Shown here piece after piece: positions 1 to 31,006 of a stretch of 64,000 bases of DNA. A program made the translations under genes and the position numbers. Location of the stretch: the sequence record ON529853.1. One strand, written 5' to 3'. The number at the start of each line of letters is the position of its first letter. The stretch's first letter is position 1. Under the pieces are notes generated by a model. That model was given only the letters and a program-made list of their open reading frames with translations, was not told the origin of the DNA and ran no database searches.

Positions 1-363
1 AATGTTAAGCAGGGCTTCCACGTCTTGACGCGGTTTCTGCGGGATACCCGTCGGGTGGGCCGAAGGGCTGTTGTCGTTGTTCGACACGGCCTTCGTCCCC
101 GACGGTTAGCACGTTGATAATGACGCGGAGGCTACGCGGAAACCCCTTGAAAGTCAAGATTTTTGGCAACGATTGCCAGCCAATAAATTCCTTGACGAAG
201 CACAGCGCCGGAATCACAACACCCCGCACCGGACGGGGGCCAGTGCGGGGTGTTGCTTGACGACGGAGGACAGGGTCAGCCGGACTAGGCCCCGTGGCTG
301 ACGACGTGCCTGATGCTTCTGTACGTGGAGGTGCGCCGCGTGTCAACCCTCTCGGTCAGATAA

Positions 364-444
364 TGGCGGGGGCGGAGGGAATCGAACCCCCTGGTTGACG
401 CCTTCGGAGGGCGTTGCCTACATTCCGGTCGGCACTTCGCCCCC
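364..444 (-). tRNA. trnR: tRNA-Arg(CCG)
   Basis: Cloverleaf; anticodon arm ACGCC-CTCCGAA-GGCGT; TTCGATT T-loop; encoded CCA. Confidence 0.9.
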
Positions 445-482
445 GAGGCGGTGGGCCGGGCGGACCCGGCGTTAAGTAAGAG

Positions 483-564
483 TGGCGCCCAAGGCAGGAT
501 TTGAACCTGCGTTTGCAACTCCGCTACGGATAAGGCCTTCGTAGGACCCCTCGGTTACTTGGGC
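483..564 (-). tRNA. Atypical tRNA-Arg(ACG)-like, no D-arm, long variable region
   Basis: Perfect acceptor GCCCAAG/CTTGGGC+G+CCA; T-arm GCAGG-TTCAAAT-CCTGC; loop CTACGAA; only 7-8 nt where the D-arm should be. Confidence 0.6.
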
Positions 565-567
565 ATT

Positions 568-651
568 TGGCTCCTATGAGAGGACTCGAACCTCTAAGTC
601 TTGCGACGGTCGATTAACAGTCGACTGCGTTTACCATTCCGCCACATAGGA
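568..651 (-). tRNA. trnN: tRNA-Asn(GTT) with extra variable arm
   Basis: GTCGA-CTGTTAA-TCGAC; variable hairpin GTC-GCAA-GAC; CCA. Confidence 0.9.
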
Positions 652-676
652 ACAAACTGAATACTGATGTTTTACC

Positions 677-750
677 TGGTTCTGGCTCTAGGAATCGAAC
701 CTAAATCTCGGAGACCAAAACTCCGCGTGATACCGTTACACTAAGCCAGA
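677..750 (-). tRNA. trnQ: tRNA-Gln(TTG)
   Basis: CGGAG-TTTTGGT-CTCCG; CCA. Confidence 0.9.
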
Positions 751-761
751 TCAGGAAAACT

Positions 762-839
762 TGGTAGGAGGTACTGGATTCGAACCAGTGAAATGTCGGT
801 ATGTAACACCGATGCCTTGGGCCGCTTGGCGAACCTCCC
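762..839 (-). tRNA. trnV: tRNA-Val(TAC)
   Basis: TCGGT-GTTACAT-ACCGA (G32); CCA. Confidence 0.8.
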
Positions 840-884
840 ATGAAAGAGTAGCGTATCTCCACTACTCAGTGACAAAAGTAAAGT

Positions 885-961
885 TGGTCCTAGCACCAGG
901 ATTTGAACCTGGGACCGAGCGGTTATCGACCGCGCGCTCTACCAAACTGAGCTATGCTAGG
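885..961 (-). tRNA. trnI: tRNA-Ile(GAT)
   Basis: GCGG-TCGATAA-CCGC (C33); CCA. Confidence 0.85.
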
Positions 962-965
962 GCTG

Positions 966-1040
966 TGGTAGCGGATACAGGAATCGCACCTGTGCTTGTC
1001 GGCGTGTCATACCGATGCCTTTCTACTTGGCTAATCCGCC
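966..1040 (-). tRNA. trnV: tRNA-Val(GAC)
   Basis: TCGGT-ATGACAC-GCCGA; T-loop TGCGATT; CCA. Confidence 0.8.
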
Positions 1041-1053
1041 ACACAGGAAAAGG

Positions 1054-1128
1054 TGGCCCACCCAGGAGCGCTCGCATCTCCGTCTCGGGGATTTCACTCC
1101 CGTGCTAATCTGTCTCAGCTATGAGTGG
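1054..1128 (-). tRNA. trnF: tRNA-Phe(GAA)
   Basis: CGGGA-GTGAAAT-CCCCG; divergent T-loop TGCGAGC; CCA. Confidence 0.75.
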
Positions 1129-1129
1129 A

Positions 1130-1213
1130 TGGTGGGAAGGGAGAGAATTCGCACTCTCACAGCTTGCGCGGGGGATTTACAGTCCCTTGGGCTCACTCGT
1201 GCCCAGCCTGCCC
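1130..1213 (-). tRNA. trnY: tRNA-Tyr(GTA)
   Basis: AGGGA-CTGTAAA-TCCCC; variable arm; CCA. Confidence 0.85.
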
Positions 1214-1280
1214 AAAATGTTACGGCTCAGTCGCCGCCGGTCATGGTGATCTCCTGGATCAGATGAAGGTGTTGAAACGG

Positions 1281-1316
1281 AAAAGGCCCGCCTGGTGGAA
1301 ACCAGGCGGGCCTTCG
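1281..1316 (-). terminator. Attenuator terminator upstream of tRNA array 1
   Basis: 14-bp stem AAGGCCCGCCTGGT/ACCAGGCGGGCCTT followed by TTTTCCGTTT on the minus strand. Confidence 0.9.
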
Positions 1317-1345
1317 AAACTTGGGTGTTCTAAGTGGGTATCAGA

Positions 1346-1441
1346 TTAAATCTGCGTCCCACCATCGCCCATGCACGAATGGCCCGCCCGGTTAAACCGG
1401 ACGACCTGAATCTGCTGCACGTTGTTGCGATAGGTGAACAT
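1346..1441 (-). CDS. Leader peptide of tRNA array 1, MFTYRNNVQQIQVVRFNRAGHSCMGDGGTQI (31 aa)
   Basis: ATG 7 nt after a -10 box (leaderless geometry); codons match all nine downstream anticodons; contains antiterminator segment. Confidence 0.85.
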   Translation of the reverse strand: MFTYRNNVQQIQVVRFNRAGHSCMGDGGTQI

Positions 1442-1448
1442 GAGGAGA

Positions 1449-1477
1449 CATTTACTACAGGTGGCGGGCAGTGTCAA
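1449..1477 (-). promoter_or_regulatory. sigma70-type promoter of array 1 leader
   Basis: TTGACA-N17-TAAATG. Confidence 0.8.
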
Positions 1478-1479
1478 CA

Positions 1480-1692
1480 TTATTGTCGACGATGGACCCA
1501 AGTTTTTTCGATCTCGCGATCCCAGACGCCCCAATTGCCGTCCGTCGGATAGTCGCGGTAGCGCCAGCCGCCGCAGTAACGGCACATGGCTTCGGTCTGG
1601 TCAGCCTCAGCGGGATGCGGCTCGCAGTCCCCCGAGACGTCGCACAAAGGCCACCCGTCCGGCCCCAGGGTGGGGTCGTCCGGGTCCGTCAC
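1480..1692 (-). CDS. Hypothetical protein, 70 aa, Cys motifs
   Basis: GTG start in GTGA overlap with upstream stop. Confidence 0.65.
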   Translation of the reverse strand: MTDPDDPTLGPDGWPLCDVSGDCEPHPAEADQTEAMCRYCGGWRYRDYPTDGNWGVWDREIEKTWVHRRQ

Positions 1693-1985
1693 AGCGTGTA
1701 GTCGACAGCGGGGTCGGGAAGCCAGACCTCTTCCAGCAGACGTTCCTGCCACTGGGCCTCGTGGTCCCAGGACAGGATCACGCCGGACCGCGTTTCGCTG
1801 CCGTCGGTCAGCGTCGCGCAGCCGTAGACGTCAAAGGGAGGCGCGCCATCATAGGAATGATGGCGCAAGGTATAGTGATGGGGACCGTTGCCGCCGCACC
1901 AGCGCACCAGAACTTTCGCTCCGTCGGGGAGAGCGCGGATTTCGGCCGGGGTCAGCCTGGGGGTATCGGGGACGGCGTGGGTCAT
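1689..1985 (-). CDS. Hypothetical protein
   Basis: Coupled ORF in operon. Confidence 0.7.
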   Translation of the reverse strand: MTHAVPDTPRLTPAEIRALPDGAKVLVRWCGGNGPHHYTLRHHSYDGAPPFDVYGCATLTDGSETRSGVILSWDHEAQWQERLLEEVWLPDPAVDYTL

Positions 1986-2248
1986 CAGGCGGGGTTCGGC
2001 GGCGTATACGGCATGGGGCGCAGACGGGGCTCGGTGCGCGGATGACTGATTCCGGTCGGCATGATGTTCAGTTGCAACCCGGCGCCCCGGCGCAGCAGCA
2101 TCATGAAGTCATGGGCACGCACAGCCTCGGCCGGCGAGGCGAATGCCAGTTCGATCAGCACGCGATTGCTGTCGGTGCTGCACGCGGTCGCGATCTCGTC
2201 AGGCTCCAGGTCCAGAGCCTGCGTGGGACTGATGTTGAGCCGGCTCAT
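1985..2248 (-). CDS. Hypothetical protein (MSRLNISP...)
   Basis: ATGA overlap with def stop. Confidence 0.7.
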   Translation of the reverse strand: MSRLNISPTQALDLEPDEIATACSTDSNRVLIELAFASPAEAVRAHDFMMLLRRGAGLQLNIMPTGISHPRTEPRLRPMPYTPPNPA

Positions 2249-2787
2249 GCGCGTTTCATCCGACGCACGTTGTCCTGGTGCTTCTTCAGCAGCATCGCCC
2301 GCTTCAGCGGCGAGACCCGGTCGATGTTGCGCACCCCGTCCAGGTGGTCCATCTCGTGCTGAAGGCAAATGGCCTTGTAGCCCTTGCCGGAGAGGCTCTG
2401 CATACGGCCGTGAATGTCCTGGTATTCGACCGTCACTTCCCGATGCCGTCGCACGGGGAAAAAGACGCCCGGCATGGACAGGCATCCCTCCGGCATCTCG
2501 ATCATGTCCTCGGACTTGTCGACGAACGTCGGGTTGATCAGGATCAGTTTGGGACGATCGACCATGGCGTCCTGCACCGGCAGGCCAACATCCGGCAGGT
2601 CGATCATGGTGAAGATGCGCAAGGGCACGCCGACCTGAACGGCGGCGAGCCCCGCGCCTTCCGCCAGCAACATGGTGTCGACCATGTCGAAGCAGAGCGC
2701 CCGCACCTCGTCGGTGATCTCGAAGACCGTATCAGAGGGCTTCGTCATCCGGGCGTCGGTGCAGGGGATGATCTGGCGCAGCGCCAT
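2245..2787 (-). CDS. def: Peptide deformylase
   Basis: Signature motifs GAGLAAVQVG, EGCLS, QHEMDHLDG. Confidence 0.97.
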   Translation of the reverse strand: MALRQIIPCTDARMTKPSDTVFEITDEVRALCFDMVDTMLLAEGAGLAAVQVGVPLRIFTMIDLPDVGLPVQDAMVDRPKLILINPTFVDKSEDMIEMPEGCLSMPGVFFPVRRHREVTVEYQDIHGRMQSLSGKGYKAICLQHEMDHLDGVRNIDRVSPLKRAMLLKKHQDNVRRMKRA

Positions 2788-3014
2788 TAGGGCAGGCTCC
2801 CCAGGCCGCCGGCGGCGGAAGCCCGCCCATCACGCCAGCGGCCGACGGCGCTGACCATCCGATCGGCCTGGCCCTCGACGACTTCCAAGACGTCGATCGC
2901 CTGCATCAGCGCCATGCGCGCGTCTTCCAGGTCAAGGTCCTGGAGTTTGACAATGCGGCCCCGCACCACGACCTGATAGTCGTGGTACGGCGCCCGTTCG
3001 GCCACTTCGGACAT
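2787..3014 (-). CDS. Hypothetical protein
   Basis: Coupled ORF. Confidence 0.7.
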   Translation of the reverse strand: MSEVAERAPYHDYQVVVRGRIVKLQDLDLEDARMALMQAIDVLEVVEGQADRMVSAVGRWRDGRASAAGGLGSLP

Positions 3015-3017
3015 GGC

Positions 3018-3311
3018 TCAGATTTCGCCGAGCGCGCTCAGGTACAGGTCCAGGATGGCGTCTTCTTCCTGGCGCTTGGCCTTGTCCTGCTTGCGCAGGC
3101 GCAGCACCTTGCGCAGAATCTTCACGTCGTATCCCTCGCCCTTGGCTTCGGCGAAGACTTCCTTCATGTCGACCATGACGGCCTGCTTGTCCTCTTCGAG
3201 GCGCTCCAGCCGCTCGATGATCGAGCGCAGGCGGCCCTGGGCGGAGGCGGTCAGGGCGTCGTCGGCCGACATGGCGTTGGCGGGCTCGACGCCGGTGGTG
3301 GTCTCGGTCAT
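3018..3311 (-). CDS. gapR: GapR-like (DUF2312) nucleoid-associated protein
   Basis: LRSIIERLERLEEDK...EAKGEGYDVKILRKVLRLRK...EEDAILDLYLSALG. Confidence 0.9.
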   Translation of the reverse strand: MTETTTGVEPANAMSADDALTASAQGRLRSIIERLERLEEDKQAVMVDMKEVFAEAKGEGYDVKILRKVLRLRKQDKAKRQEEDAILDLYLSALGEI

Positions 3312-3335
3312 AGGTCTCTCGGGGTTGGTCGCCGG

Positions 3336-3584
3336 TTATCCGGTGATGAGGAAACGGAGGACGGCGAGAAGTTCGCGGTCCGCATCAGGCTGTAGGGCCT
3401 TCTGGTCGATGAGGCGCAGGGCGGCGTTCTTGCGCGCCTGCTTCTTGGCGGCGTGGACGCCGAGAGTTTGCGCCAAGGCGCGCATCTCGGTCTCGTCCAC
3501 ATAGGCGCCGAGCGCATCCCCATACCGCCGGTTGGCGGGATAGGTGGCGTAGTCGGGGGCGAGCGGCGGTAGGCCGTCCATCAC
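3336..3584 (-). CDS. Hypothetical protein
   Basis: GGAGA RBS; GTGA overlap. Confidence 0.6.
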   Translation of the reverse strand: MMDGLPPLAPDYATYPANRRYGDALGAYVDETEMRALAQTLGVHAAKKQARKNAALRLIDQKALQPDADRELLAVLRFLITG

Positions 3585-3757
3585 ATGTCTCCACAAGGAT
3601 CGTGCAGGGTGTCGCCCTGGTCGAGGTCCTCGACGAAACGGCCGTCCCGGAAACGACCGGTGGTGGTCTGGCCGTTGAGCCGGCGCACGACCCGCAACTG
3701 ATGGTCCAGCCAGTAGTAGGGCACGCCCCACGCCTCGCGGTAGACCGGCTCGGTCAC
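3581..3757 (-). CDS. Hypothetical protein
   Basis: GTGA overlap with upstream stop. Confidence 0.6.
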   Translation of the reverse strand: MTEPVYREAWGVPYYWLDHQLRVVRRLNGQTTTGRFRDGRFVEDLDQGDTLHDPCGDM

Positions 3758-4014
3758 GAGTAGGTCGCGCCTGAAGCGCGAACCACCAGATCGGCGACAG
3801 GTTTGCCGTGGGCGACGATCATCTCGTCGTAGGTGTTGATGTGGAAACGCATCAGGGCGTTGTCGACCGTCTGCCAGGCGTAGGCCTTCCACGCGTCGCG
3901 GGCGTCTTCGCGGCGCGTGAAAGACCCCACGAAGATGATCTTGCGCGGATCGCGGAAGGCTTCGTCGCGGGGATGGGGGTGCTCGCCCCCATAGACGTAA
4001 TAGGTGTCAGGCAT
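3754..4014 (-). CDS. DUF4170-like protein
   Basis: YVYGGE...FVGSF...AWKAYAWQTVDNALMRFHI pattern, recognised by eye. Confidence 0.75.
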   Translation of the reverse strand: MPDTYYVYGGEHPHPRDEAFRDPRKIIFVGSFTRREDARDAWKAYAWQTVDNALMRFHINTYDEMIVAHGKPVADLVVRASGATYS

Positions 4015-4016
4015 GC

Positions 4017-4904
4017 TTACAAAGTCACGATCAATCGGGGATTGAAGTTCGGGTTCAGTTCATGCCCGACATAGCCGCGCGGATTGCAGATCACGCGGGT
4101 CTCGCCGATCTGGTAGTCGCTGCTGTCATGCATATGACCATGGACCCACAGGGCGGGCTCCCATTCCAGCATCAGCGGCTCCAGCCGCGAGGCGTAGGCC
4201 GGGTTCAGCGGCGATCCCCGATAGCGATGGTGGCTCGACTGCTCCGACGGCGCATGGTGAGTAATCACCACGGTCGGGCCGTCATGCGGAACCCGTAGCG
4301 TTTCGGCCAGGAAGAACCGGCTCTCCAGGTGAAGGCGCCGCGTGTCTTCCGCCGTCAGGCGCTGCTGCTGCTTCAGTTCGATCTGCTGATAGTCGTTCAT
4401 ATCGGACTGGGCGTGCCGGATCGACAAGGGCCAGGTCCCGTAGAGATCGAAGTCGGTCCACAGGGTGGCGCCGAGGAACCGGACGTCGCCCATATGGACC
4501 TGCTCGTTATCCATGACGAAGACGCGGGCGGGCGCCAGTTCGTCCGCCTTGGCCTTCATCTTCTCGATGTGGCGGTGGTAGCGCCGCTTGCCGTAGAACT
4601 CGTGGTTGCCCGGCACATAGAGGCAAGGGACGTCAGGGAAATGACGCGCCAGCCAGATCACGCCGACGACGCCCGTCGCCAGGTCGCCGGCGGCGATGAC
4701 CAAATCGATCTCGTCCGCCGTCGGCGCCGTCCAGGTGCGCCGGTCCATGCCGCCGAACTCCAGATGGAGGTCCGACAGGATCAGGGCGCGCAAGGGCCGT
4801 CGTCCGGACCGGCGCTGCGCCAGGCCGGCTTCGATGTCGGCCTGCATGTCGGCCGCAGCCGCCACGGTGAACTCCATCTCAGCCTTGCTCCACTCGGTCT
4901 CCAT
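4017..4904 (-). CDS. Calcineurin-like metallophosphoesterase
   Basis: SDLH, AGD, GNHE, THH, HGH motifs. Confidence 0.93.
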   Translation of the reverse strand: METEWSKAEMEFTVAAAADMQADIEAGLAQRRSGRRPLRALILSDLHLEFGGMDRRTWTAPTADEIDLVIAAGDLATGVVGVIWLARHFPDVPCLYVPGNHEFYGKRRYHRHIEKMKAKADELAPARVFVMDNEQVHMGDVRFLGATLWTDFDLYGTWPLSIRHAQSDMNDYQQIELKQQQRLTAEDTRRLHLESRFFLAETLRVPHDGPTVVITHHAPSEQSSHHRYRGSPLNPAYASRLEPLMLEWEPALWVHGHMHDSSDYQIGETRVICNPRGYVGHELNPNFNPRLIVTL

Positions 4905-4924
4905 CGTGGAGCATCCTTGAAATC

Positions 4925-4999
4925 TGGAGCGGGTGGACAGACTCGAACTGCCGCCTCCGGGTTAGCCACCCGGCGCTCCTGGGTCCACGCGAACCCCCG
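4925..4999 (-). tRNA. Atypical tRNA-like gene (GCT anticodon, short variable loop)
   Basis: CCGGG-TGGCTAA-CCCGG; TTCGAGT T-loop; CCA; mismatched acceptor stem. Confidence 0.55.
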
Positions 5000-5282
5000 A
5001 CGATGATTCGCGTGATCATCGTCGGCCCTAGAGCCTCACCCGCATAAGTTGGCAGGAGTTTTCAGATATGGCGAGCCATACCCAGGGCGACCCTCCTGCC
5101 AGGAACCCCCGTCTCGGTTTCTTTCACCGGCCCCGACACGAGCACCTGTCAAAGCCTATTTAGCCGTCAGGCTTGTGAGAACAAGAGAGGCGATTAGGCG
5201 CCTCTCGATGAACCACGTTGCGGACGGACGTAACATCGGCTTGCCGTGATTACTGGCAGACGGCGCCGTAGCTGTCAACAAT

Positions 5283-5317
5283 GAAAAACGCCCCGACCTT
5301 TCGATCGGGGCGTTCTT
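5283..5317 (-). terminator. Intrinsic terminator
   Basis: AACGCCCCGA-TCGAAAGG-TCGGGGCGTT followed by TTT. Confidence 0.8.
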
Positions 5318-5628
5318 CAGAGATTCGCCATCCACTGCTTGCGGCAGCGGGTGTGGTCCTTCCAGGACTTGCCGCCGGGACGCGACGCCATGAGGTCGTC
5401 GTAGGACGACGGCAGGACCATCCGGCGGCCACGGGCGCGGTAGAGGCGGTCGTGGGCTTCGCCGGTGTTGCGACGCCGCTCCTGCATGGTGCGGGGGCAG
5501 CGATGCATGTAGCGCCAGCGATGGCGGAAACGCCGGCAGCGGTAGGGCTCGCCGGGCTCCAGGTAGAGGACGCGCCAGCCCACGAAGTAGAAGCCGGTGT
5601 GGGTGACGCGTTCAAATTGGGGCTTCAT
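5317..5628 (-). CDS. Small basic Arg-rich protein at the end of tRNA array 2
   Basis: AGGAGG RBS; C-terminal LPSSYDD...KSWKDHTRCRKQW. Confidence 0.75.
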   Translation of the reverse strand: MKPQFERVTHTGFYFVGWRVLYLEPGEPYRCRRFRHRWRYMHRCPRTMQERRRNTGEAHDRLYRARGRRMVLPSSYDDLMASRPGGKSWKDHTRCRKQWMANL

Positions 5629-5728
5629 GACAGCCTCCTGCTAGGTTGAGTACCTAGCGGGTGCTGTATTCCAGGTAGAATTTGATCATGGCCGCATCCT
5701 ATCTCAAGCGGGGCGGTTCGTCGAGGAA

Positions 5729-5817
5729 TGGCGGATGGGGCAGGGATCGAACCCGCGTAACCCTCTCGGGTGTCGACCGCTTAGCAAGCGGCTGCCTTAC
5801 CTCTCGGCCACCCATCC
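5729..5817 (-). tRNA. trnS: tRNA-Ser(GCT)
   Basis: GCCGC-TTGCTAA-GCGGT; long variable arm; CCA. Confidence 0.93.
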
Positions 5818-5824
5818 GGGGTGA

Positions 5825-5909
5825 TGGCGGTGCGCCAGGGAATCGAACCCTCAACCTTGCGGTCGGCGACGGTTTTCAAGGCCGCTTGTCCCCATGGACG
5901 CTGCACACC
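5825..5909 (-). tRNA. trnS: tRNA-Ser(TGA)
   Basis: Loop CTTGAAA; long variable arm; CCA. Confidence 0.85.
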
Positions 5910-5914
5910 AAAGA

Positions 5915-6005
5915 TGGCGGACGGCACGCGATTCGAACGCGTGGGACCCAGGGGGTCCGCCTGCTTTCCAAGCAGGTGCCTTAAGCCGGGCTCAGCCAGC
6001 CGTCC
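5915..6005 (-). tRNA. trnS: tRNA-Ser(GGA)
   Basis: CCTGC-TTGGAAA-GCAGG; CCA. Confidence 0.92.
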
Positions 6006-6010
6006 GGTCT

Positions 6011-6228
6011 TGGTGGAGGCGAGGGGATTCGAACCCCCGTAGACGCCGAACCCCCGCATTACCGAGGGCCGATCTCAGGTTTAGAACGCGTGTGCCGTCC
6101 TGACCATCTTCCGCAGGCCAGGAGGTCTATCGTAACGACCCCGTCGATCGGTTGCCTCTGCGTCCCGGATTTACCCGGACCGTTGTTCTGTTCCACGGTG
6201 CTCATGCCGAAACCCGAGCGACGCCCCC
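6011..6228 (-). ncRNA. Short tmRNA-like RNA with Ala-type acceptor (218 nt)
   Basis: 5' GGGGGCG pairs with 3' CGCCTCC-A-CCA (G3.U70); canonical T-arm; structured insert of over 100 nt; no canonical tag frame. Confidence 0.65.
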
Positions 6229-6238
6229 GTGAAGGAAA

Positions 6239-6326
6239 TGGAGGATGGTGTGGGATTCGAACCCACGGAACCTTGCGGTCCTCCGGCTTTCGAAACCGGC
6301 GCGATCGGCCACTCCGCCAACCATCC
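6239..6326 (-). tRNA. trnS: tRNA-Ser(CGA)
   Basis: CCGGT-TTCGAAA-GCCGG; CCA. Confidence 0.93.
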
Positions 6327-6333
6327 AGAACAG

Positions 6334-6522
6334 TCAGGCCGAGGCCGGACTGTAGTTGTCGATGTCGTCGACCCGGATCGCCGTGCCCGCCGCAATCTGG
6401 CGGTCGGCGCTCAACAGGTCGGCGACCAGGTCGTCGGCCGAGACGGCGGTGCCGAGGGTGGCGAACTTCACGTTCACCAGGCGGCCGTCCGCAAACATCT
6501 CGTCGATCGCGGCGCGATCCAT
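6334..6522 (-). CDS. Hypothetical protein inside tRNA array (62 aa)
   Basis: AAAGGT RBS; fills gap between tRNAs. Confidence 0.7.
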   Translation of the reverse strand: MDRAAIDEMFADGRLVNVKFATLGTAVSADDLVADLLSADRQIAAGTAIRVDDIDNYSPASA

Positions 6523-6555
6523 GATAGACCTTTCTGCCGGACGCGCCGGCGGTGA

Positions 6556-6626
6556 TGGTGGAGACAGTGGGGCTCGAACCCACCAAGGCGTCCTTGCAAA
6601 GGATGCCTGCGCCCTGCGCTGTCCCC
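6556..6626 (-). tRNA. trnA: tRNA-Ala(TGC)
   Basis: CATCC-TTTGCAA-GGACG; G3.U70; CCA. Confidence 0.9.
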
Positions 6627-6663
6627 GTAGGGGTTGATCGTCAGCCATGCTGACAACCATTGT

Positions 6664-6739
6664 TGGTCCTGGCACTCAGATTCGAACTGAGCCATCGTGC
6701 TCCACAAACACGCGCCTCCACCGCAGAGGCTTTACCAGG
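6664..6739 (-). tRNA. trnH: tRNA-His(GTG), no G-1, A73
   Basis: CGTGT-TTGTGGA-GCACG; CCA. Confidence 0.9.
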
Positions 6740-6741
6740 GT

Positions 6742-6829
6742 TGGTCGCGACGACAGGGATCGAACCTGCCCGGCCTCTCGGCCACTACCACCTCAAGGTA
6801 GCGCGTCTACCAGACTCCGCCACGTCGCG
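6742..6829 (-). tRNA. trnL: tRNA-Leu(GAG)
   Basis: CTACC-TTGAGGT-GGTAG; CCA. Confidence 0.93.
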
Positions 6830-6838
6830 ATCGAATGT

Positions 6839-6924
6839 TGGTGCCCGACCCCGGACTCGAACCGGGACGCCACGAGGGCCACGCCTTTTGAGGGCGCTGT
6901 GTCTACCGTTCCAGCCAGACGGGC
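6839..6924 (-). tRNA. trnL: tRNA-Leu(CAA)
   Basis: GCGCC-CTCAAAA-GGCGT; CCA. Confidence 0.93.
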
Positions 6925-6933
6925 AGTGAAAGA

Positions 6934-7020
6934 TGGTGCGGGTGAGAGGATTCGAACCTCCCCGGCACAAAGGCCACGAGTACCTGAGACTCGCGCGGCT
7001 ACCAACTTCGCCACACCCGC
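6934..7020 (-). tRNA. trnL: tRNA-Leu(CAG)
   Basis: CGAGT-CTCAGGT-ACTCG; CCA. Confidence 0.93.
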
Positions 7021-7025
7021 ATTTT

Positions 7026-7108
7026 TGGAGAACCCTGGTGGAGTCGAACCACTTGCGCCTGGATTAAAAGCCCAATCCCGGCCACCCGGATTTAACGCTC
7101 AAGGTCCC
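7026..7108 (-). tRNA. trnK: tRNA-Lys(TTT)
   Basis: TTGGG-CTTTTAA-TCCAG; enlarged D region; CCA. Confidence 0.8.
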
Positions 7109-7120
7109 CTAAAATGATGT

Positions 7121-7211
7121 TGGTGAACGTGGTCGGACTCGCACCGACGATGAAGGTTGTAACCTAACGGGATTAAGAGCCCCGGCCTCTCGCTACTGAG
7201 GTGACACGTCC
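7121..7211 (-). tRNA. trnK: tRNA-Lys(CTT) with long variable arm
   Basis: CGGGG-CTCTTAA-TCCCG; T-loop TGCGAGT; CCA. Confidence 0.8.
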
Positions 7212-7249
7212 AAAACTGTTGTTCTTCTCCTGAAGACTTGATATGTGCA

Positions 7250-7320
7250 TGGAGCCGGCGGACGGTGTCGAACCGTCCCATGTCCACTACGAAAGGTCAG
7301 CCCTGCCACCAGGCGCCGGC
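7250..7320 (-). tRNA. trnT: tRNA-Thr(CGT), weak anticodon stem
   Basis: Perfect acceptor GCCGGCG/CGCCGGC; loop TTCGTAG; CCA. Confidence 0.65.
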
Positions 7321-7328
7321 GTTGTTGT

Positions 7329-7399
7329 TGGTGCCAAGGGAGGGAGTCAAACCCTCGCTGAACCCATACCAAGGGCTCGACCGATCACCCGGCCTTGGC
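7329..7399 (-). tRNA. trnT: tRNA-Thr(GGT)
   Basis: AGCCC-TTGGTAT-GGGTT; CCA. Confidence 0.8.
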
Positions 7400-7407
7400 G
7401 TTGAAGA

Positions 7408-7482
7408 TGGTCGGAACACCGGGATTCGAACCTGGGACCCCTAGCTTCCCGAGCCAGTGCGCTACCGCTGCGCTACATTCCG
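7408..7482 (-). tRNA. trnP: tRNA-Pro(GGG)
   Basis: CTGGC-TCGGGAA-GCTAG (C33); CCA. Confidence 0.88.
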
Positions 7483-7491
7483 ATTTGAAGA

Positions 7492-7568
7492 TGGTCGGCG
7501 AGGGAGGATTCGAACCTCCGATCCCTCCGACCCGAACGGAGTGACTTACCAGACTTGCCCACACGCCG
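7492..7568 (-). tRNA. trnP: tRNA-Pro(CGG)
   Basis: CTCCG-TTCGGGT-CGGAG; CCA. Confidence 0.92.
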
Positions 7569-7577
7569 ATGGAAACG

Positions 7578-7611
7578 AAAAAAGGCCCCGGAGGCTATGC
7601 GCCTGGGGCCT
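7578..7611 (-). terminator. Attenuator terminator upstream of tRNA array 2
   Basis: AGGCCCCAGGC...GCCTCCGGGGCCT followed by a T-run. Confidence 0.9.
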
Positions 7612-7682
7612 GAAACAACTGCTGTTTTGGGATTCAGCAGGTGATCGGCCCCTTAAGGGCGCCTCACCTGCGAGGACTGGAC

Positions 7683-7817
7683 TTAGGGCCAGCCTTCCAA
7701 GGAGACGCCACCGGTGGTGGGGGACTTCGGCGACAGTTTCGTCGGCGCATGCGCGAGCGTCGACAGCGCCGTGGCGGCGGTCGAAAGATGGCTCAGCTTG
7801 TGCGACAAGGTAGTCAC
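7683..7817 (-). CDS. Leader peptide of tRNA array 2, MTTLSHKLSHLSTAATALSTLAHAPTKLSPKSPTTGGVSLEGWP (44 aa, GTG start)
   Basis: Codons 2-35 encode only T/L/S/H/K/A/P, the amino acids of the downstream tRNAs. Confidence 0.85.
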   Translation of the reverse strand: MTTLSHKLSHLSTAATALSTLAHAPTKLSPKSPTTGGVSLEGWP

Positions 7818-7869
7818 GATGAAGGTCCAGTCCGAAGAAGGAGCGCGAATGCGCTGTGATGAAGTCTGA

Positions 7870-7898
7870 TCTCTACAGGAAGCTTGAGCGTATGTCAA
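7870..7898 (-). promoter_or_regulatory. sigma70-type promoter of array 2 leader
   Basis: TTGACA-N17-TAGAGA. Confidence 0.8.
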
Positions 7899-8095
7899 GA
7901 ACTTCAGCAGAAAAAGTTGGTAGAGGGGCTGATCGCGCTTGTCGAGCGACCCTCTCGAAACGCCTTGTGCCAGGATCGGCGGCGATCGTCAACAGGGAAA
8001 ATGCACGCGCGCGGCCGAGGGGGAGCGGAAGACCGCGCGCGTGCCCGGCAGACCGTCGGGGGACGGGGCCTGGGTCGTCGGGGGACGGGGAGGGG

Positions 8096-8332
8096 TCAGC
8101 CGGCGCGGCGCTTGAGCGTCTCGTGCAGCGGCGGATAGGGGACCGGGCCGTAGATCACCTCGACGAGGCGAGGGCGGCGGCCGGTGCGGATTTTGGAAGG
8201 CAGGGGCACGTTGCGGCGCCGCAGTTCGGCGGCGGCGGCGGCGCTCGCCAGGGAGCCTGACAGGTAGACGCCGATCAGTTCGGCGACCGTCAGGGTCATC
8301 ATGCGCTGGGCGCGGGTGGTGTTGTGAGCCAC
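8096..8332 (-). CDS. Hypothetical protein
   Basis: GGAGA RBS; downstream terminator-like hairpin at ~8000-8045. Confidence 0.65.
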   Translation of the reverse strand: MAHNTTRAQRMMTLTVAELIGVYLSGSLASAAAAAELRRRNVPLPSKIRTGRRPRLVEVIYGPVPYPPLHETLKRRAG

Positions 8333-8430
8333 GAGGGTCTCTCCATCTGGATGTGATCCAGGCGGGAGACGCGGTTTCGCGCTGGGTGACCGGTGTGGTC
8401 CCCGTCCTGGAAATTACCAGATGCGAGAGT

Positions 8431-8622
8431 TTAGTCGGAGGGCTTGGCCCCGAAGACCGAGGCGATCGCCGTCAAAGCCTTCTTGACCCGGTTGGGTCGC
8501 TGGGTCAGCGCCGAGGCGCAGACCTTCTTGATTTCGTCGAGGGTGAGCGAGGCCGGGTCACGCAGGCCGCGCGCGGCGATCGAGCCGACGCTGGCGGAGG
8601 TGACTTCGGGGGTGGTGCTCAT
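8431..8622 (-). CDS. Hypothetical protein (63 aa)
   Basis: GAGG RBS directly after tRNA-Asp. Confidence 0.65.
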   Translation of the reverse strand: MSTTPEVTSASVGSIAARGLRDPASLTLDEIKKVCASALTQRPNRVKKALTAIASVFGAKPSD

Positions 8623-8633
8623 GGAAAAACCTC

Positions 8634-8708
8634 TGGCGAGTCCAAGGGGAGTTGAACCCCTCTCTCCACCGTGACAGGGTGGTGTCCTAACCGATAGACG
8701 ATGGACCC
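8634..8708 (-). tRNA. trnD: tRNA-Asp(GTC)
   Basis: CCACC-CTGTCAC-GGTGG; CCA. Confidence 0.93.
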
Positions 8709-8739
8709 GTATCAGAGGGTCGATCCGCAGGAAGATGCT

Positions 8740-8817
8740 TGGAAGGGCGCCGGAGACTCGAACTCCGCTCACTTGGTTGAAAGCCAAGTATCCTGCAAAC
8801 CGCTAGACGAGCGCCCC
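8740..8817 (-). tRNA. trnE: tRNA-Glu(TTC)
   Basis: CTTGG-CTTTCAA-CCAAG; CCA. Confidence 0.92.
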
Positions 8818-8913
8818 ATAAAGCACAGGGCGTCGAACACGAGAGCCGCGATTAGGCGGCGGTCGTATCTCGGCCCTGGAAGGCCTCTCGTTCGTAGCTG
8901 GTCAGACGGTAGG

Positions 8914-9129
8914 TCATTTGGTGCTTGTAACAGAACTGTCGGTGGGTGTCAAGAAGGACGGCGAATCTTTTTTGGCCTTTCGGGCGGGACGATCTTCCTC
9001 GCCCTCAGGCTCGGCCGCGTCCCAGCCCATCCACAGGGCCGCGAGAAAGGCAGGCGGACCCATCAGGGCTTCCAACCGCTTCAAGGCCCGGTCGTTGGCC
9101 GCCAGGAAGGCGTCGCCGTATTCAAGCAT
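8914..9129 (-). CDS. Hypothetical protein (71 aa)
   Basis: GAGGT RBS before ATG at 9129. Confidence 0.55.
   Translation of the reverse strand: MLEYGDAFLAANDRALKRLEALMGPPAFLAALWMGWDAAEPEGEEDRPARKAKKDSPSFLTPTDSSVTSTK
8924..8952 (-). promoter_or_regulatory. Promoter for the Glu/Asp tRNA pair
   Basis: TTGACA-N17-TACAAG. Confidence 0.7.
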
Positions 9130-9269
9130 GGAACCTCGGAGGATACAGGGACAGGCTTCAATGGGCGGCGTTTGACCGCGCCCATCTCGGCGGTAGCAGC
9201 GCACCAGCCCTGCTCGGCTGGCCCCGCCCCTCGTTCCGGCATGTGCCAGGATCGACGGCAAAGGTCAAG

Positions 9270-9577
9270 GGGGGAATTGCGGTGGGTACAGCTTCAACCG
9301 GCCTTGCGGCCTGCGGGTCTTTCGGGCGTCCTGCCCACCGCGCCTACTACGACGCCTTTTTCGGCCCCGGCGCGCCGGAGAAGAAAAATCGACGGGTGAC
9401 CGCTACCGGCCTCGCCTGCTGGCCCGTCCCAGCGCCTGACCTTCTCGACGCGACGCCCTTGTGGGCGTTATGGCCTTCCCGTCCGAAGACAGACGCCGCG
9501 AAGGGTCAGCGGGACCGCATGATCGTCAGCCGCACGGCCAGCGCAGCGAGAGGTTCAGAGGCCTGTCCCGGAAAGAG
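9270..9577 (-). ncRNA. Unknown structured RNA directly downstream of tRNA-Gly
   Basis: Two multibranch domains with long closing stems and UUCG/GAAA/GCAA tetraloops; no credible ORF. Confidence 0.6.
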
Positions 9578-9652
9578 TGGAGCGACTGGTCGGAATCGAA
9601 CCGACGTCCCCAGGTTGGAAGCCTGGTGCTAAGGCCCCTCAGCTACAGTCGC
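9578..9652 (-). tRNA. trnG: tRNA-Gly(TCC)
   Basis: CCAGG-CTTCCAA-CCTGG; U73; CCA. Confidence 0.93.
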
Positions 9653-9666
9653 AGTATAAAACAAGG

Positions 9667-9742
9667 TGGAGCGACTCTCGGGACTCGAACCCGACCCTGC
9701 GCGTTGGCAACGCGTTGTACCCACCCATAATACGTGAGTCGC
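9667..9742 (-). tRNA. trnG: tRNA-Gly(GCC)
   Basis: ACGCG-TTGCCAA-CGCGC; CCA. Confidence 0.9.
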
Positions 9743-9754
9743 ATGGTTAATAAA

Positions 9755-9836
9755 TGGCACGGGTGGAGGGATTCGAACCCCCGACATATGCTGGTTTTGG
9801 AGACCAGTGCCTTGAGCCAGACTTGGCGACACCCGT
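9755..9836 (-). tRNA. trnW: tRNA-Trp(CCA)
   Basis: CTGGT-CTCCAAA-ACCAG; CCA. Confidence 0.92.
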
Positions 9837-9849
9837 GTAAACTTGAAGG

Positions 9850-10374
9850 CTACTTGTAGCGCTCTTGGAGGAACTTGACAACCCGCTGCGGCGTACTTTC
9901 GTCTGCGGTGGTCCGGAAATCGATCCGGTCCCCCAACAGCGCCAGCAGTTTCTTGTCCACCTCCAGGGCCTCCCTCTCGTTGTGGTGGCGGCCGTAGGTC
10001 TGATAGGCGGACGCCGGTCGATCGAGCCAGACGTTGACGTTCTCGTAGGAATCAAAGAGGTCGAAGACCTCCTGGTGGAACTCCGGCTGGGCGTAGTCGC
10101 CCTGGCCGTAGATGCAGCCCAGCAGCAAGGGGCTGTCGGTCAGAATCCAGTCGACGTGCCCGAGAAACCGTTTCAGCCGCGACGCCTGCTTCCAGGTGAC
10201 GCGCCGTTGATCCGCCAGGGTCGCCCAGTCCTTAGAGACAGAACGCTCAGTGGCGTATTCCTCGACCTGGGCGGCGCGGTAGCCGCCGATCTTCATGTGA
10301 AAGAAGGTGCCGGCCTTGACCGTCGACTTTCCGCCGCACGGGCCGGACCAGAAGTTCAGGACACGCGTCGTCAT
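9850..10374 (-). CDS. P-loop NTPase/kinase (NadR/AAA_28-like)
   Basis: N-terminal SGPCGGKST Walker A; ILTDSPLL. Confidence 0.8.
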   Translation of the reverse strand: MTTRVLNFWSGPCGGKSTVKAGTFFHMKIGGYRAAQVEEYATERSVSKDWATLADQRRVTWKQASRLKRFLGHVDWILTDSPLLLGCIYGQGDYAQPEFHQEVFDLFDSYENVNVWLDRPASAYQTYGRHHNEREALEVDKKLLALLGDRIDFRTTADESTPQRVVKFLQERYK

Positions 10375-10445
10375 TCAGCAAACGGACTTTCAACCGGCTG
10401 GCAGGATTCAGGTTTTGCGGGGGTGGCGCAGTGCGCCGGCAGGTC

Positions 10446-10745
10446 TTAGCTGCGCCAGCTTCCGTCGGCGTCGTCAACGACGTCCGTGGAATCCAGGTCG
10501 GCTTCGACCGTCCGGCGCTGTCGACCTCGGCCGCGTCCGCGCGGCGCCTCTTCAGCATCCTCGGGCTCGGCCAAGACGATGAGGGCCTCGACATCGTCGA
10601 CGACGATCTCAACCGGAGCGACGACTTCGACGCGAGTCCAGGGCGTGCGCGACCAGCCGTGCTCAAGCACGAGGTTGCTCGCCTTCGCCGTGGGAACGTC
10701 GAAGGGCTCGCAAGTTTCCGGATGATAAACGCGCTCGGTAGCCAT
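10446..10745 (-). CDS. Hypothetical protein, N-terminus resembles 26276-26824 product
   Basis: VYHPETCEPFDV...NLVLEHGWS vs IYDPNGNPEKH...DLVVGAGYT. Confidence 0.7.
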   Translation of the reverse strand: MATERVYHPETCEPFDVPTAKASNLVLEHGWSRTPWTRVEVVAPVEIVVDDVEALIVLAEPEDAEEAPRGRGRGRQRRTVEADLDSTDVVDDADGSWRS

Positions 10746-10790
10746 AGTGAGGGACCTTATACGAACTGCACGCGATTGTCAATTATTACG

Positions 10791-11576
10791 TCAATCGAGC
10801 GCCCATCGGAACCATACGGCCTTCTTCTCTCCCGGCGTTTCCGCGTATTCAGCCTCCACGGGCGTGACGAAGTCGTTGAGGAAGGCGCCGTTCAGAAAAT
10901 CGCCCGTCGCCCGATGGCCGAGGATGAAGCGCGGGGGTCCGCCAGGTCCGTAGGTGTCGAACCCTTGACCGATGCGTCCGCCCGCAAGGCGTCGAACCGT
11001 ACACGCGGCCTGGGTCCAGAGGTAGGCGCGGTAGCGGCCGCGCCGCAGGCGCGTGTTGAGCGCCAGGCGCAACATGGACCCGACAGGCGGGGCTGCCTCA
11101 ATGTGGGAGAAGACGAGTTGATCGGCGGCGTCATACAGGCCGATCCGCACCGCGCCGGCGCCGGCAGTCACCCAGACGCCGGCTTCGACCAGGCGAATCG
11201 TATCCGAGGCGACGTAGAAATCTTCAAACAGAATGGTTTCGGGCGGCAGGTCGACATCTTCCGGAGCCCCGTCCAAGGCCAGGCCAGGAACGGCGAACCC
11301 GCCCGGCGGCAAGTCTACCGCCACGACCCCGTCGACGACCGCCAGCGGCGCGAGGTCCGGGTCCCAAACCAGGACGCCGGCCTTGCGCGTCAGGGGCGCG
11401 CCTTGCGGTCCTGCCGCCGGGGCGACGCCGGAGACGGCGGCCGGCAGGTGGATGGATTCAGGGCGTCCCTCGACGCGAATGTGCAGCGTCCGGTCAGCCG
11501 TGTTGTGCCCGACCTGACCCGGCAGCAGATGCGGGCGCGCCTTCGGCGTGGAGGAGTGTTTGTTCTGGACCGCCAT
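10791..11576 (-). CDS. Putative virion fibre-associated protein
   Basis: In structural operon; fibre-type LPGQVGHNTADRTL motif. Confidence 0.65.
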   Translation of the reverse strand: MAVQNKHSSTPKARPHLLPGQVGHNTADRTLHIRVEGRPESIHLPAAVSGVAPAAGPQGAPLTRKAGVLVWDPDLAPLAVVDGVVAVDLPPGGFAVPGLALDGAPEDVDLPPETILFEDFYVASDTIRLVEAGVWVTAGAGAVRIGLYDAADQLVFSHIEAAPPVGSMLRLALNTRLRRGRYRAYLWTQAACTVRRLAGGRIGQGFDTYGPGGPPRFILGHRATGDFLNGAFLNDFVTPVEAEYAETPGEKKAVWFRWALD

Positions 11577-12190
11577 CAGAGGAACCGCAGGGAAACGACA
11601 TGGTGTTGAGGGGTAGGGGACCAGGGAGACACCGTCCGCACCTGCTCCACGATCATGTTCGACGTCGTCGGCGTGGTCTCGATCGTGTAATGCCCCGGCG
11701 CCAACGAGAGATCAAAACCAGGCTCCAACGTGAGGACGCCATTGATGGCGAAGGCGTGCGTTACGATCATGACGCCTTTTGCATCGAGAAGGCGGGCCGT
11801 CAGCGTGCCCGTCCCGCCTGCGCCGCGCACCCGCATCGCGATCAACTGGGCCGGCTCCAGCAGAGTGATCGAAGCGGTCCGCACCACGGAGCCGAACGGG
11901 AGCAGGCTCACTTCCAGGGGCGCACATCCGGGCAGAACCCACAGCTTGCGATCCATGGGTCGGCCGCCGCCGCCGGCCTGTAGCGGCCCGTGCACGACGC
12001 CGCCCTCCGTCATCAGGCGGACGTCGTCGCCGCCGAGCGTGCGTTCGGGCAGCAGGGGCACGTCCATATCGAACGCATCCGTCCCGACGCCCAGGATGCG
12101 GGCCGCCGGATCGAGCGTCAGTTCGCCCGGCGCGCGCGGCTGGGGCGGGTTGGCCTCATAGGGCGTCAGGTAAATGGTGTCAGGCATCAG
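11576..12190 (-). CDS. Putative virion structural protein
   Basis: ATGA-coupled; PGELTLDPAARIL motif. Confidence 0.65.
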   Translation of the reverse strand: MMPDTIYLTPYEANPPQPRAPGELTLDPAARILGVGTDAFDMDVPLLPERTLGGDDVRLMTEGGVVHGPLQAGGGGRPMDRKLWVLPGCAPLEVSLLPFGSVVRTASITLLEPAQLIAMRVRGAGGTGTLTARLLDAKGVMIVTHAFAINGVLTLEPGFDLSLAPGHYTIETTPTTSNMIVEQVRTVSPWSPTPQHHVVSLRFL

Positions 12191-30903: not shown

Positions 30904-30932
30904 ACCCTAACAAAAAAGATCGCCATTGTCAA
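30904..30932 (-). promoter_or_regulatory. Promoter of scaffold/capsid operon
   Basis: TTGACA-N17-TAGGGT. Confidence 0.7.
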
Positions 30933-31006
30933 GATTCTCAGCAAATAACGCTTGCAATCCTGACAATGGCGATCTAAAGATGGGGGTTTGCCGGAAGTTC
31001 GGGTCG

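Follow-up and report, generated by a model that had tools for sequence, protein, structure and literature searches.

A codon-matched leader ahead of a tRNA gene array in Brevundimonas phage vB_BpoS-Bambus as a candidate translation-dependent transcription attenuator

Introduction

Which signal governs the expression of a cluster of 15 tRNA genes in a jumbo phage, and why is the short open reading frame (ORF) ahead of it composed, over 34 successive codons, exclusively of codons for the seven amino acids served by those tRNAs? The question is raised by a stretch of 64,000 nucleotides from sequence record ON529853.1 (hereafter, the window), which is 100% identical to Brevundimonas phage vB_BpoS-Bambus (348 kb, Dolichocephalovirinae); all leader and array coordinates below refer to the minus strand of the window, unless stated otherwise. 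The upstream ORF (uORF) and the hairpins that separate it from tRNA array 2 are designated here as leader 2, and the comparison of sequences and RNA modelling indicate that leader 2 is probably a translation-dependent (ribosome-mediated, leader-peptide) transcription attenuator controlling the array. This reading is supported by conservation, composition, spacing, predicted alternative structures and the presence of a second, classical attenuator in the same genome, while the specific polarity of the switch and its role as a tRNA homeostat are held with less confidence than the attenuator itself.

The enterobacterial his, thr and ilvGMEDA attenuators contain a promoter-proximal short ORF enriched in regulatory codons, and the position of the ribosome on it selects either an antiterminator or an intrinsic terminator. 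In ilv and thr, sensing is not limited to a single amino acid, and the pairing segments of the his leader number more than four.

Organisation of leader 2 and tRNA array 2

The main features of the locus are as follows.

7893–7898, minus strand: −35 hexamer TTGACA, invariant in all 7 Brevundimonas jumbo phages
7870–7875, minus strand: −10-like hexamer TAGAGA (TAAAGA in Gurke), 17 nt past the −35 hexamer, a resemblance to the consensus only
7826–7828, minus strand: Shine–Dalgarno-like GGA, 8 nt ahead of the GTG codon
7683–7817, minus strand: leader 2 uORF, GTG, 43 sense codons and TAA (7685–7683), putative peptide (M)TTLSHKLSHLSTAATALSTLAHAPTKLSPKSPTTGGVSLEGWP
7713–7814, minus strand: putative sensing codons 2–35, all for Thr, Leu, Ser, His, Lys, Ala or Pro
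7578–7611, minus strand: predicted intrinsic terminator (segments 4:5), ending 9 nt ahead of tRNA-Pro
5729–7568, minus strand: array 2, the putatively regulated unit of 15 tRNA genes, delineated with ARAGORN (default and relaxed) and homology
Content of array 2, first part: Pro-CGG, Pro-GGG, Thr-GGU, Thr-CGU, Lys-CUU, Lys-UUU, Leu-CAG, Leu-CAA, Leu-GAG
Content of array 2, remainder: His-GUG, Ala-UGC, Ser-CGA, Ser-GGA, Ser-UGA, Ser-GCU

The original prediction placed here a promoter TTGACA-N17-TAGAGA, a GTG-initiated uORF and a terminator, and all three were located: the promoter hexamers occupy positions 7898–7893 and 7875–7870, the uORF runs from 7817 to the stop codon with exactly the claimed translation, and the terminator, AGGCCCC AGGC GCAUA GCCU CC GGGGCCU (7611–7583) with a run of six U (7583–7578), has an interrupted GC-rich stem. 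Transcription would start near position 7862, about 45 nt ahead of the GTG codon. The promoter motif CTTGACA-N17-TA occurs in the window in three copies against 0.04 expected, and two of these lie ahead of tRNA leaders, the remaining one being situated at 30908–30933 on the minus strand, not adjacent to tRNA genes. A simple promoter/terminator scanner detected neither the leader 2 promoter nor its terminator; its rules exclude −10 hexamers ending in A and interrupted stems, the latter being the reason why the terminator was missed, and both elements were judged from sequence, folds and conservation. GenBank contains no annotation in the 527 nt from tRNA-Pro to the neighbouring coding sequence (CDS).

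The list of 15 tRNA genes for seven amino acids given earlier was reproduced as well. ARAGORN with default settings called 11 tRNA genes in array 2, and a slightly relaxed threshold additionally yielded Thr-CGU, Lys-CUU, Lys-UUU and Ser-UGA. The Thr-GGU gene (7395–7325), which has an atypical T-loop, was not called by ARAGORN and was recognised solely via homology, through alignment to the Thr-GGU genes called in phages Bajun and phiCbK and in one metagenome contig.

Codon match between leader 2 and array 2

The limitation of codons 2–35 to the seven amino acids, the central observation of the earlier work, is unmatched in the window: all 34 codons belong to the T/L/S/H/K/A/P set, and no other run of this kind is as long in any of the six frames of the 64 kb. 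The runners-up span 27 and 21 codons, and both are Ala/Pro/Thr low-complexity stretches. The set accounts for 0.456 of six-frame codons and 0.416 of long-ORF codons.

A match had also been claimed at the level of isoacceptors. By strict wobble, 32/34 sensing codons are cognate to array 2 tRNAs, and all 14 tRNA species called by ARAGORN have at least one cognate codon in the leader, Ser-UGA solely through TCG wobble, since leader 2 has no TCA codon. The uncalled Thr-GGU is matched by ACC and ACT codons, as judged by eye. A clearer relationship concerns lysine. Each of the seven leaders whose array contains tRNA-Lys-UUU has one AAA codon, whereas none of the six leaders whose array lacks this tRNA contains AAA, their 16 Lys codons being exclusively AAG; the position of AAA differs, being codon 27 in Bambus and codon 31 in Gurke. 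Judged by sequence comparison, the association is a clean property of the codon level. Likewise, CcrSC represents the only lineage with Trp-CCA in the counterpart of array 2, and TGG is found in the sensing part of its leader.

Conservation of leader 2 across phages

The uORF is present in 7/7 Brevundimonas jumbo phages, with an invariant GTG at position 7817, and homologous small ORFs followed by hairpins precede the first Pro tRNA gene in phages Bajun, phiCbK, Rogue, Colossus, CcrPW and CcrSC. The phiCbK homologue is the annotated gp335, followed by an annotated terminator; those of Colossus and CcrPW are unannotated. Four further variants, followed by the same arrays, came from metagenomes through a profile search of 5.8 billion proteins, and an IMG/VR scan with a neighbouring conserved protein returned known isolates only. 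A PHROG search assigned gp335 to family 12742 (4.8e-28); the leader peptides of Bambus and CcrSC had no match at E<=0.01, and no function was assigned from PHROG. The homology of the gp335, Bambus and CcrSC leaders is visible solely with a custom alignment. Outside the subfamily, no codon-matched leaders were seen in Roseobacter phage DSS3P8 or in Erythrobacter phage XM05, no tRNA genes were called in one 18 kb stretch of Sphingobium phage Lacusarx, and a PhoH tblastn search was of no help in locating arrays.

Across lineages, the uORF has 39–48 codons, and the distance from its stop codon to the first tRNA gene is 112–119 nt in isolates and 107–119 nt in metagenome contigs. A GGA, AGGA or AAGGA motif is found 8–10 nt ahead of the start codon in every lineage examined. 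Hairpin A, the first hairpin past the stop codon, starts 11–13 nt beyond it in all lineages, just outside the reach of a terminating ribosome according to the commonly accepted footprint, and it is invariant between the Bambus and Gurke groups, while the 5′ untranslated region varies. The amino-acid identity to the Bambus peptide falls to 26–40% between lineages, and 514/536 residues upstream of the last nine codons, counted across 16 distinct leaders from six or more lineages, remain within the array set, compared with the six-frame background given above. Substitutions stay within the set as well (T to K, H to L, H to P, K to T, P to T), and indels comprise whole codons, with the inserted codons again within the set, as in the case of the AAT insertion in Ccr2. 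As far as sequences can tell, these are the signature of a translated frame selected for its codons and not for its peptide.

The leader might, alternatively, encode a small functional protein, the hairpins being an ordinary leaky terminator or insulator and the resemblance to the array set a consequence of GC-rich low complexity. The homologues of phiCbK, Rogue, CcrSC and Bajun are indeed annotated as hypothetical proteins, gp335 has a PHROG family of its own, Ala/Pro/Thr-rich runs exist elsewhere in the window, and a few peptide motifs are shared, e.g., LSH and LAHAP. Nevertheless, a peptide preserved for its function hardly explains why 96% of residues stay within the set at the low identity noted above, why the set includes His, Lys and Leu, which are atypical of low complexity, or why leader 1 of the same genome (see below) matches a wholly different set of amino acids in the same way. 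In addition, the motif in the tail of the uORF is kept at the RNA level across reading frames, and the stop-to-hairpin spacing is fixed. The small-protein explanation is considered quite unlikely.

A 50-aa CDS is annotated on the opposite strand of the uORF, on the plus strand of the respective loci, in Papperlapapp (L002 5113–5265) and Kabachok (L004 5115–5267); given the conserved features of the sense strand, this annotation is probably spurious. Opposite-strand ORFs were considered as evidence and set aside as uninformative, as all six frames are long and stop-free in this GC-rich DNA.

Predicted folding switch of leader 2

RNA folding divides the region between the sensing codons and the array into the following elements.

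7689–7709, minus strand: segment 1, uORF tail GGCGUCUCCUUG..AGGCUGG, predicted to pair with segment 2 when ribosome-free
7658–7680, minus strand: segment 2, spacer and 5′ arm of hairpin A (CCAGUCCU..CAGGUGAGGCGCC), as delineated by folding
7634–7673, minus strand: hairpin A (segments 2:3, putative anti-antiterminator), predicted to form with the tail masked
7635–7652, minus strand: segment 3, GGGGCCGA.CACCUGCUG, loop and 3′ arm of hairpin A, pairing with segment 4 in free-tail folds
7605–7624, minus strand: segment 4, CAGCAGUUG..UCAGGCCCC, including the 5′ arm of the terminator; 3:4 is the putative antiterminator
7595–7583 and the subsequent U run, minus strand: segment 5, 3′ part of the terminator (segments 4:5)

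The minimum free energy (MFE) fold contains two helices between segments 1 and 2, 7709–7698:7670–7658 and 7695–7689:7680–7673 (about 19 bp, with the stop codon looped), and the antiterminator helices 7652–7645:7613–7605 and 7643–7635:7624–7616, the latter pair being present in the alifold structure too. Both pairings named in the original prediction, which lie within 7709–7698:7670–7658 and 7652–7645:7613–7605, are part of the MFE fold. The alternative pairings of the four-segment switch proposed there are predicted and recur, with different sequences, in phiCbK and Colossus; the folding gives five segments. With the tail free, 1:2 and 3:4 are predicted; masking of the tail, which mimics a ribosome that has reached the stop codon, yields hairpin A (2:3) and the terminator (4:5) instead. 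The RNAalifold consensus of eight Brevundimonas-type leaders corresponds to the 1:2 plus 3:4 form, with 9 pairs supported by compensatory changes.

Masked full-length equilibrium folds always contained the terminator and folds of truncated transcripts always contained the antiterminator; as these are non-discriminating, they were replaced by base-pair probabilities and tail shuffles. The predicted terminator probability responds to the masking of the tail as follows.

Bambus: 0.40 with the tail free, 0.97 with a ribosome at the stop codon
Papperlapapp: 0.45 and 0.97
phiCbK: 0.07 and 0.67
Colossus: 0.10 and 0.72
CcrPW: 0.15 and 0.81

Three metagenome variants behave similarly, and overall the probability rises from 0.07–0.45 (free) to 0.63–0.98 (ribosome at the stop codon), whereas it stays low with the ribosome at codon 16 or 24. 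Equilibrium modelling fits ribosome-position control in 8/14 sequences. Native tails suppress the terminator better than 83–95% of shuffled tails in each of three diverged lineages tested, a result that is marginal in each lineage taken alone and consistent across the three. The same switch is predicted in phiCbK and Colossus from unrelated sequences; phiCbK can form the pairings GGCCUCGCACUC:GGGUGCAGGCC and GGAGCCGC:GCGGCUCC, of which the latter, like the corresponding Colossus pairing, is analogous to the antiterminator of Bambus. A clear terminator is likewise seen in Gurke, Bajun, phiCbK and Rogue. The Bajun leader retains the segment 1 motif GGCGUC in another reading frame, which argues that the tail is constrained as RNA and not as peptide and would explain why the codon match ends at codon 35.

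It is very unlikely that the locus functions as an untranslated structured RNA, such as an element of precursor processing or stability or a small RNA released by termination, with an incidental open frame. Leader 2 does fold more stably than its shuffles (z = −4.3), the nucleotides of the uORF core and hairpins are near-invariant, even at third codon positions, between the Bambus and Gurke groups, long stop-free stretches occur in six frames of such GC-rich DNA, and the Shine–Dalgarno-like motif is weak. Yet the frame-specific composition persists across lineages with little common nucleotide sequence, the start and stop positions and whole-codon indels are conserved, and the association of Lys-UUU with AAA exists at the level of codons.

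A second leader in the same genome

The suggestion that the same logic was built twice in this genome finds support in leader 1, which precedes array 1 (Tyr, Phe, Val, Ile, Val, Gln, Asn, Arg, Arg) and includes the following features.

1472–1477, minus strand: promoter hexamer TTGACA (1477–1472)
1346–1441, minus strand: leader 1 ORF, MFTYRNNVQQIQVVRFNRAGHSCMGDGGTQI, from ATG 1441 to TAA 1346
1282–1315, minus strand: strong terminator (1315–1282)

The codon sets of the two leaders are complementary: 16/17 of the first codons of leader 1 (MFTYRNNVQQIQVVRFNR...) belong to the array 1 set and 1/17 to the array 2 set, while the sensing codons of leader 2 fall 34/34 into the array 2 set and 0/34 into that of array 1. 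The free RNA of leader 1 is predicted to form 1406–1396:1392–1381 and the terminator. A ribosome at codon 8 would release 1393–1376, which then pairs with 1316–1300 (17 bp) and abolishes the terminator; with the ribosome further along, the terminator is restored. By folding, leader 1 is a textbook four-segment trp-type attenuator, a design different from that of leader 2 and matched to its own array, and it is kept in phiCbK, CcrSC and Bajun. As an independent case in the same genome, it provides strong support for the general idea of codon-matched attenuation. The GenBank CDS BAMBUS_04500 starts at 1480, inside the −35 hexamer, and the true start is therefore probably ATG 1441.

Proposed mechanism

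The original core reading, a translated codon-matched leader that controls a terminator ahead of the array, agrees with the composition, indels, Shine–Dalgarno-like motif, spacing and predicted pairings described above. According to the mechanism proposed here, a host-type promoter would start the transcript about 45 nt before the GTG codon, and the first 34 sense codons would sample the codons read by the 15 downstream tRNAs. The last nine codons of the uORF would not be part of the sensor; their RNA, segment 1, would act through its complementarity to segment 2, the 5′ arm of hairpin A. A ribosome that keeps up with RNA polymerase would cover segment 1 and halt at TAA, 11 nt ahead of hairpin A, whereupon hairpin A (2:3) and the terminator (4:5) would form and transcription would stop 9 nt before tRNA-Pro. 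If a cognate charged tRNA were scarce, the ribosome would be delayed at any of the 34 codons, segments 1 and 2 would pair once segment 2 has been made, and segment 3 would be left free for segment 4, the 5′ arm of the terminator, allowing the polymerase to enter the array. The outcome would depend on a race between ribosome and polymerase, with the delays summed over 34 codons and about 15 tRNA species.

Since pairing of segments 1 and 2 need not wait for the transcription of segment 3, readthrough would be the default whenever the ribosome is late or missing, and the folds suggest that untranslated leader 2 RNA favours it. One expectation attached to the original prediction, that a start-codon knockout should lock termination, is reversed by these folds, and high expression would be expected from such a mutant. 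We infer a negative-feedback loop, in which a limiting, depleted or cleaved host pool would lead to the synthesis of these tRNAs, and their synthesis would be halted once they are plentiful.

Translation could also control the terminator by another logic, with the leader serving as a general rate gauge or late-infection timer, or working with the opposite polarity, and not as a tRNA-specific sensor. The ribosome would be held back by slow elongation of whatever cause, several lineages give ambiguous equilibrium folds, and the state without translation is predicted to read through, unlike in trp. A non-specific gauge, however, requires neither codons restricted to the array nor two leaders with complementary sets, and against the opposite polarity stands the rise in terminator probability upon masking of the tail. 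This possibility appears unlikely.

Several observations weigh against leader 2 being a tRNA-sensing attenuator. At the codon level, the two GCC codons are non-cognate to Ala-UGC by strict wobble, and complete coverage of isoacceptors has, given the peptide, P of about 0.2 per lineage, which is not significant alone; for a given amino-acid sequence, this part of the earlier claim is only suggestive. The CcrSC leader retains ACC codons, though its Thr-GGU gene sits in another array, and CTA codons occur without tRNA-Leu-UAG. As the array content is near-invariant across the subfamily, true covariation of array and leader rests on the Lys-UUU/AAA association and the one Trp case. As for the structures, Gurke, Kikimora, Bajun, Rogue and CcrSC show no clean equilibrium switch, and in Colossus and CcrSC the last hairpin lacks a good U-tract, giving a weak terminator. 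Several array 2 tRNAs are atypical and missed by default tools, and their function is putative. Furthermore, stalling due to amino-acid starvation would not be remedied by additional tRNA, and a sensing stretch of 34 codons exceeds that of any classical leader known to us.

A broader proposal has about an even chance of being correct, namely that the Dolichocephalovirinae, including phiCbK, possess a closed-loop tRNA homeostat, in which the tRNA repertoire is divided among arrays, each large array lies behind its own codon-mirroring leader and depletion induces the matching array. The depletion might originate from phage demand, host shut-off or host anticodon nucleases. If the proposal is true, these would be the first tRNA genes under leader-peptide attenuation, and the homeostat would constitute a new phage counter-measure to tRNA-targeting defence. 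The element is also present in phiCbK, a phage of the genetically tractable Caulobacter crescentus, and is thus directly testable.

Relation to known systems

At the sequence level, leader 2 has the components of a leader-peptide attenuator, including a promoter-proximal short ORF with a start codon and a Shine–Dalgarno-like motif, relevant codons, a predicted terminator and a predicted, mutually exclusive antiterminator. It differs from amino-acid operon attenuators in what lies downstream, which is 15 tRNA genes and a 62-aa ORF, with no biosynthetic enzyme or aminoacyl-tRNA synthetase. The closest mechanism is that of the his, thr and ilv leaders, his being multi-segment and thr and ilv sensing multiple amino acids, but leader 2 is encoded by a phage and would regulate tRNA genes in place of biosynthetic enzymes, it would sample seven amino acids and about 15 tRNA species over 34 codons, and, when untranslated, it is predicted to read through and not to super-attenuate. 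The leader of trp, trpL, is reproduced by leader 1 in its four-segment logic (1:2 and 3:4 in the free RNA, 2:3 with the ribosome stalled at the sensing codons), whereas leader 2 has five segments, and its predicted ribosome-sensitive part is the uORF tail and not the sensing codons.

The pheM-pheST leader and T-box riboswitches control aminoacyl-tRNA synthetase genes according to tRNA charging, and leader 2 would resemble them in tying the expression of a component of the translation machinery to the state of the cognate tRNAs; in contrast to them, its output would be tRNA itself and the sensing would proceed via the ribosome, not direct tRNA binding. Leader 2 has neither a T-box sequence nor a specifier loop, and positions 7570–7900 were matched by no Rfam T-box or leader family; an Rfam cmscan of positions 1–12000 at E<=1 gave tRNA-like hits and chance matches only.

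Clustered tRNA genes in a large phage are shared with T4, T5 and mycobacteriophages, whose arrays are thought to sustain late translation or replace cleaved host tRNAs. We know of no demand-sensing leaders in those arrays, while each of the two large arrays of Bambus has its own codon-matched, putative attenuator. To our knowledge, leader-peptide attenuation has been described for amino-acid biosynthesis and for a small number of synthetase genes, not for tRNA genes, and no description of attenuator control of tRNA arrays was found in the literature searched (full text). The phiCbK genome paper proposes codon supplementation as the sole role of the tRNAs and reports tRNAs and predicted terminators, with no leader or attenuator, Rfam having found nothing but tRNAs (PMC3556154); the description of Bambus merely counts the tRNAs (PMC10070969).

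The attenuation mechanism is, in essence, a known one; the target, breadth, length and phage origin of leader 2 are different and unreported in the literature searched. If the reading is right, the supply of tRNA would be sensed directly through decoding speed and corrected at the level of tRNA transcription, and there would be a concrete reason for the grouping of phage tRNA genes. Phage tRNA arrays would then be inducible on demand and not constitutive, which bears on the debate between codon usage and evasion of tRNA-cleaving defences as the explanation for such arrays. A long multi-codon leader would also offer a natural part for synthetic sensors of translational capacity.

Other features of the tRNA region

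On the minus strand, the tRNA region begins with a gene for a P-loop protein, which is followed by Trp-Gly-Gly tRNA genes, a small CDS, Glu-Asp, two small CDSs, leader 2 with array 2, about 4 kb of genes and, finally, leader 1 with array 1. The remaining features of the region are listed below.

8852–8953, minus strand: a third promoter (CTTGACA-N17-TA) and a 20-codon ORF, MTYRLTSYEREAFQGRDTTAA, just ahead of tRNA-Glu and tRNA-Asp
368–564, 1054–1213, 5825–5909 and 7026–7395, minus strand: unannotated tRNA genes Arg-CCG, Arg-CCU, Phe-GAA, Tyr-GUA, Ser-UGA, Lys-UUU, Lys-CUU, Thr-CGU and Thr-GGU
6334–6522, minus strand: 62-aa ORF BAMBUS_04660, MDRAAIDEMFADGRLVNVKF..., inside array 2 between tRNA-Ala and tRNA-Ser, kept in Gurke
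6008–6230, minus strand: tRNA-like element of about 225 nt, inside array 2 between Ser-CGA and Ser-GGA

The 20-codon ORF contains two Glu codons and one Asp codon and is conserved in phiCbK (MTHLLTRYEREATGLDTTTA), Rogue, Bajun and Colossus; in phiCbK, the 5′ arm of a terminator lies inside its counterpart. This ORF may represent a third, differently built attenuator.

Nine tRNA genes, several with atypical arms, are absent from both the GenBank annotation and the default ARAGORN calls. According to the phiCbK genome paper, Thr and Tyr tRNAs are missing from all phages of the group (PMC3556154), a statement which is probably a detection artefact.

The tRNA-like element at 6230–6008 combines an acceptor stem (GGGGGCG:CGCCUCC) with a T-arm and a CCA end, and it carries a large insertion, about 150–170 nt in length. 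Its Rfam match to transfer-messenger RNA (tmRNA) is below threshold (31.9 bits against a gathering score of 47), and ARAGORN made no tmRNA call for it. An insert of similar length is found in the Brevundimonas jumbo phages and is absent from phiCbK.

In arrays lacking Lys-UUU, a palindromic motif, (A)TGTTCCCGATCGGGATCA, is present twice in the vacant slot, which is the case in three separate lineages: Bajun (locus L010, 7813–7893), CcrSC (L009, 11346–11425) and a metagenome contig (L025, 1971–2046). The motif could be a small repeat element or a scar of replacement.

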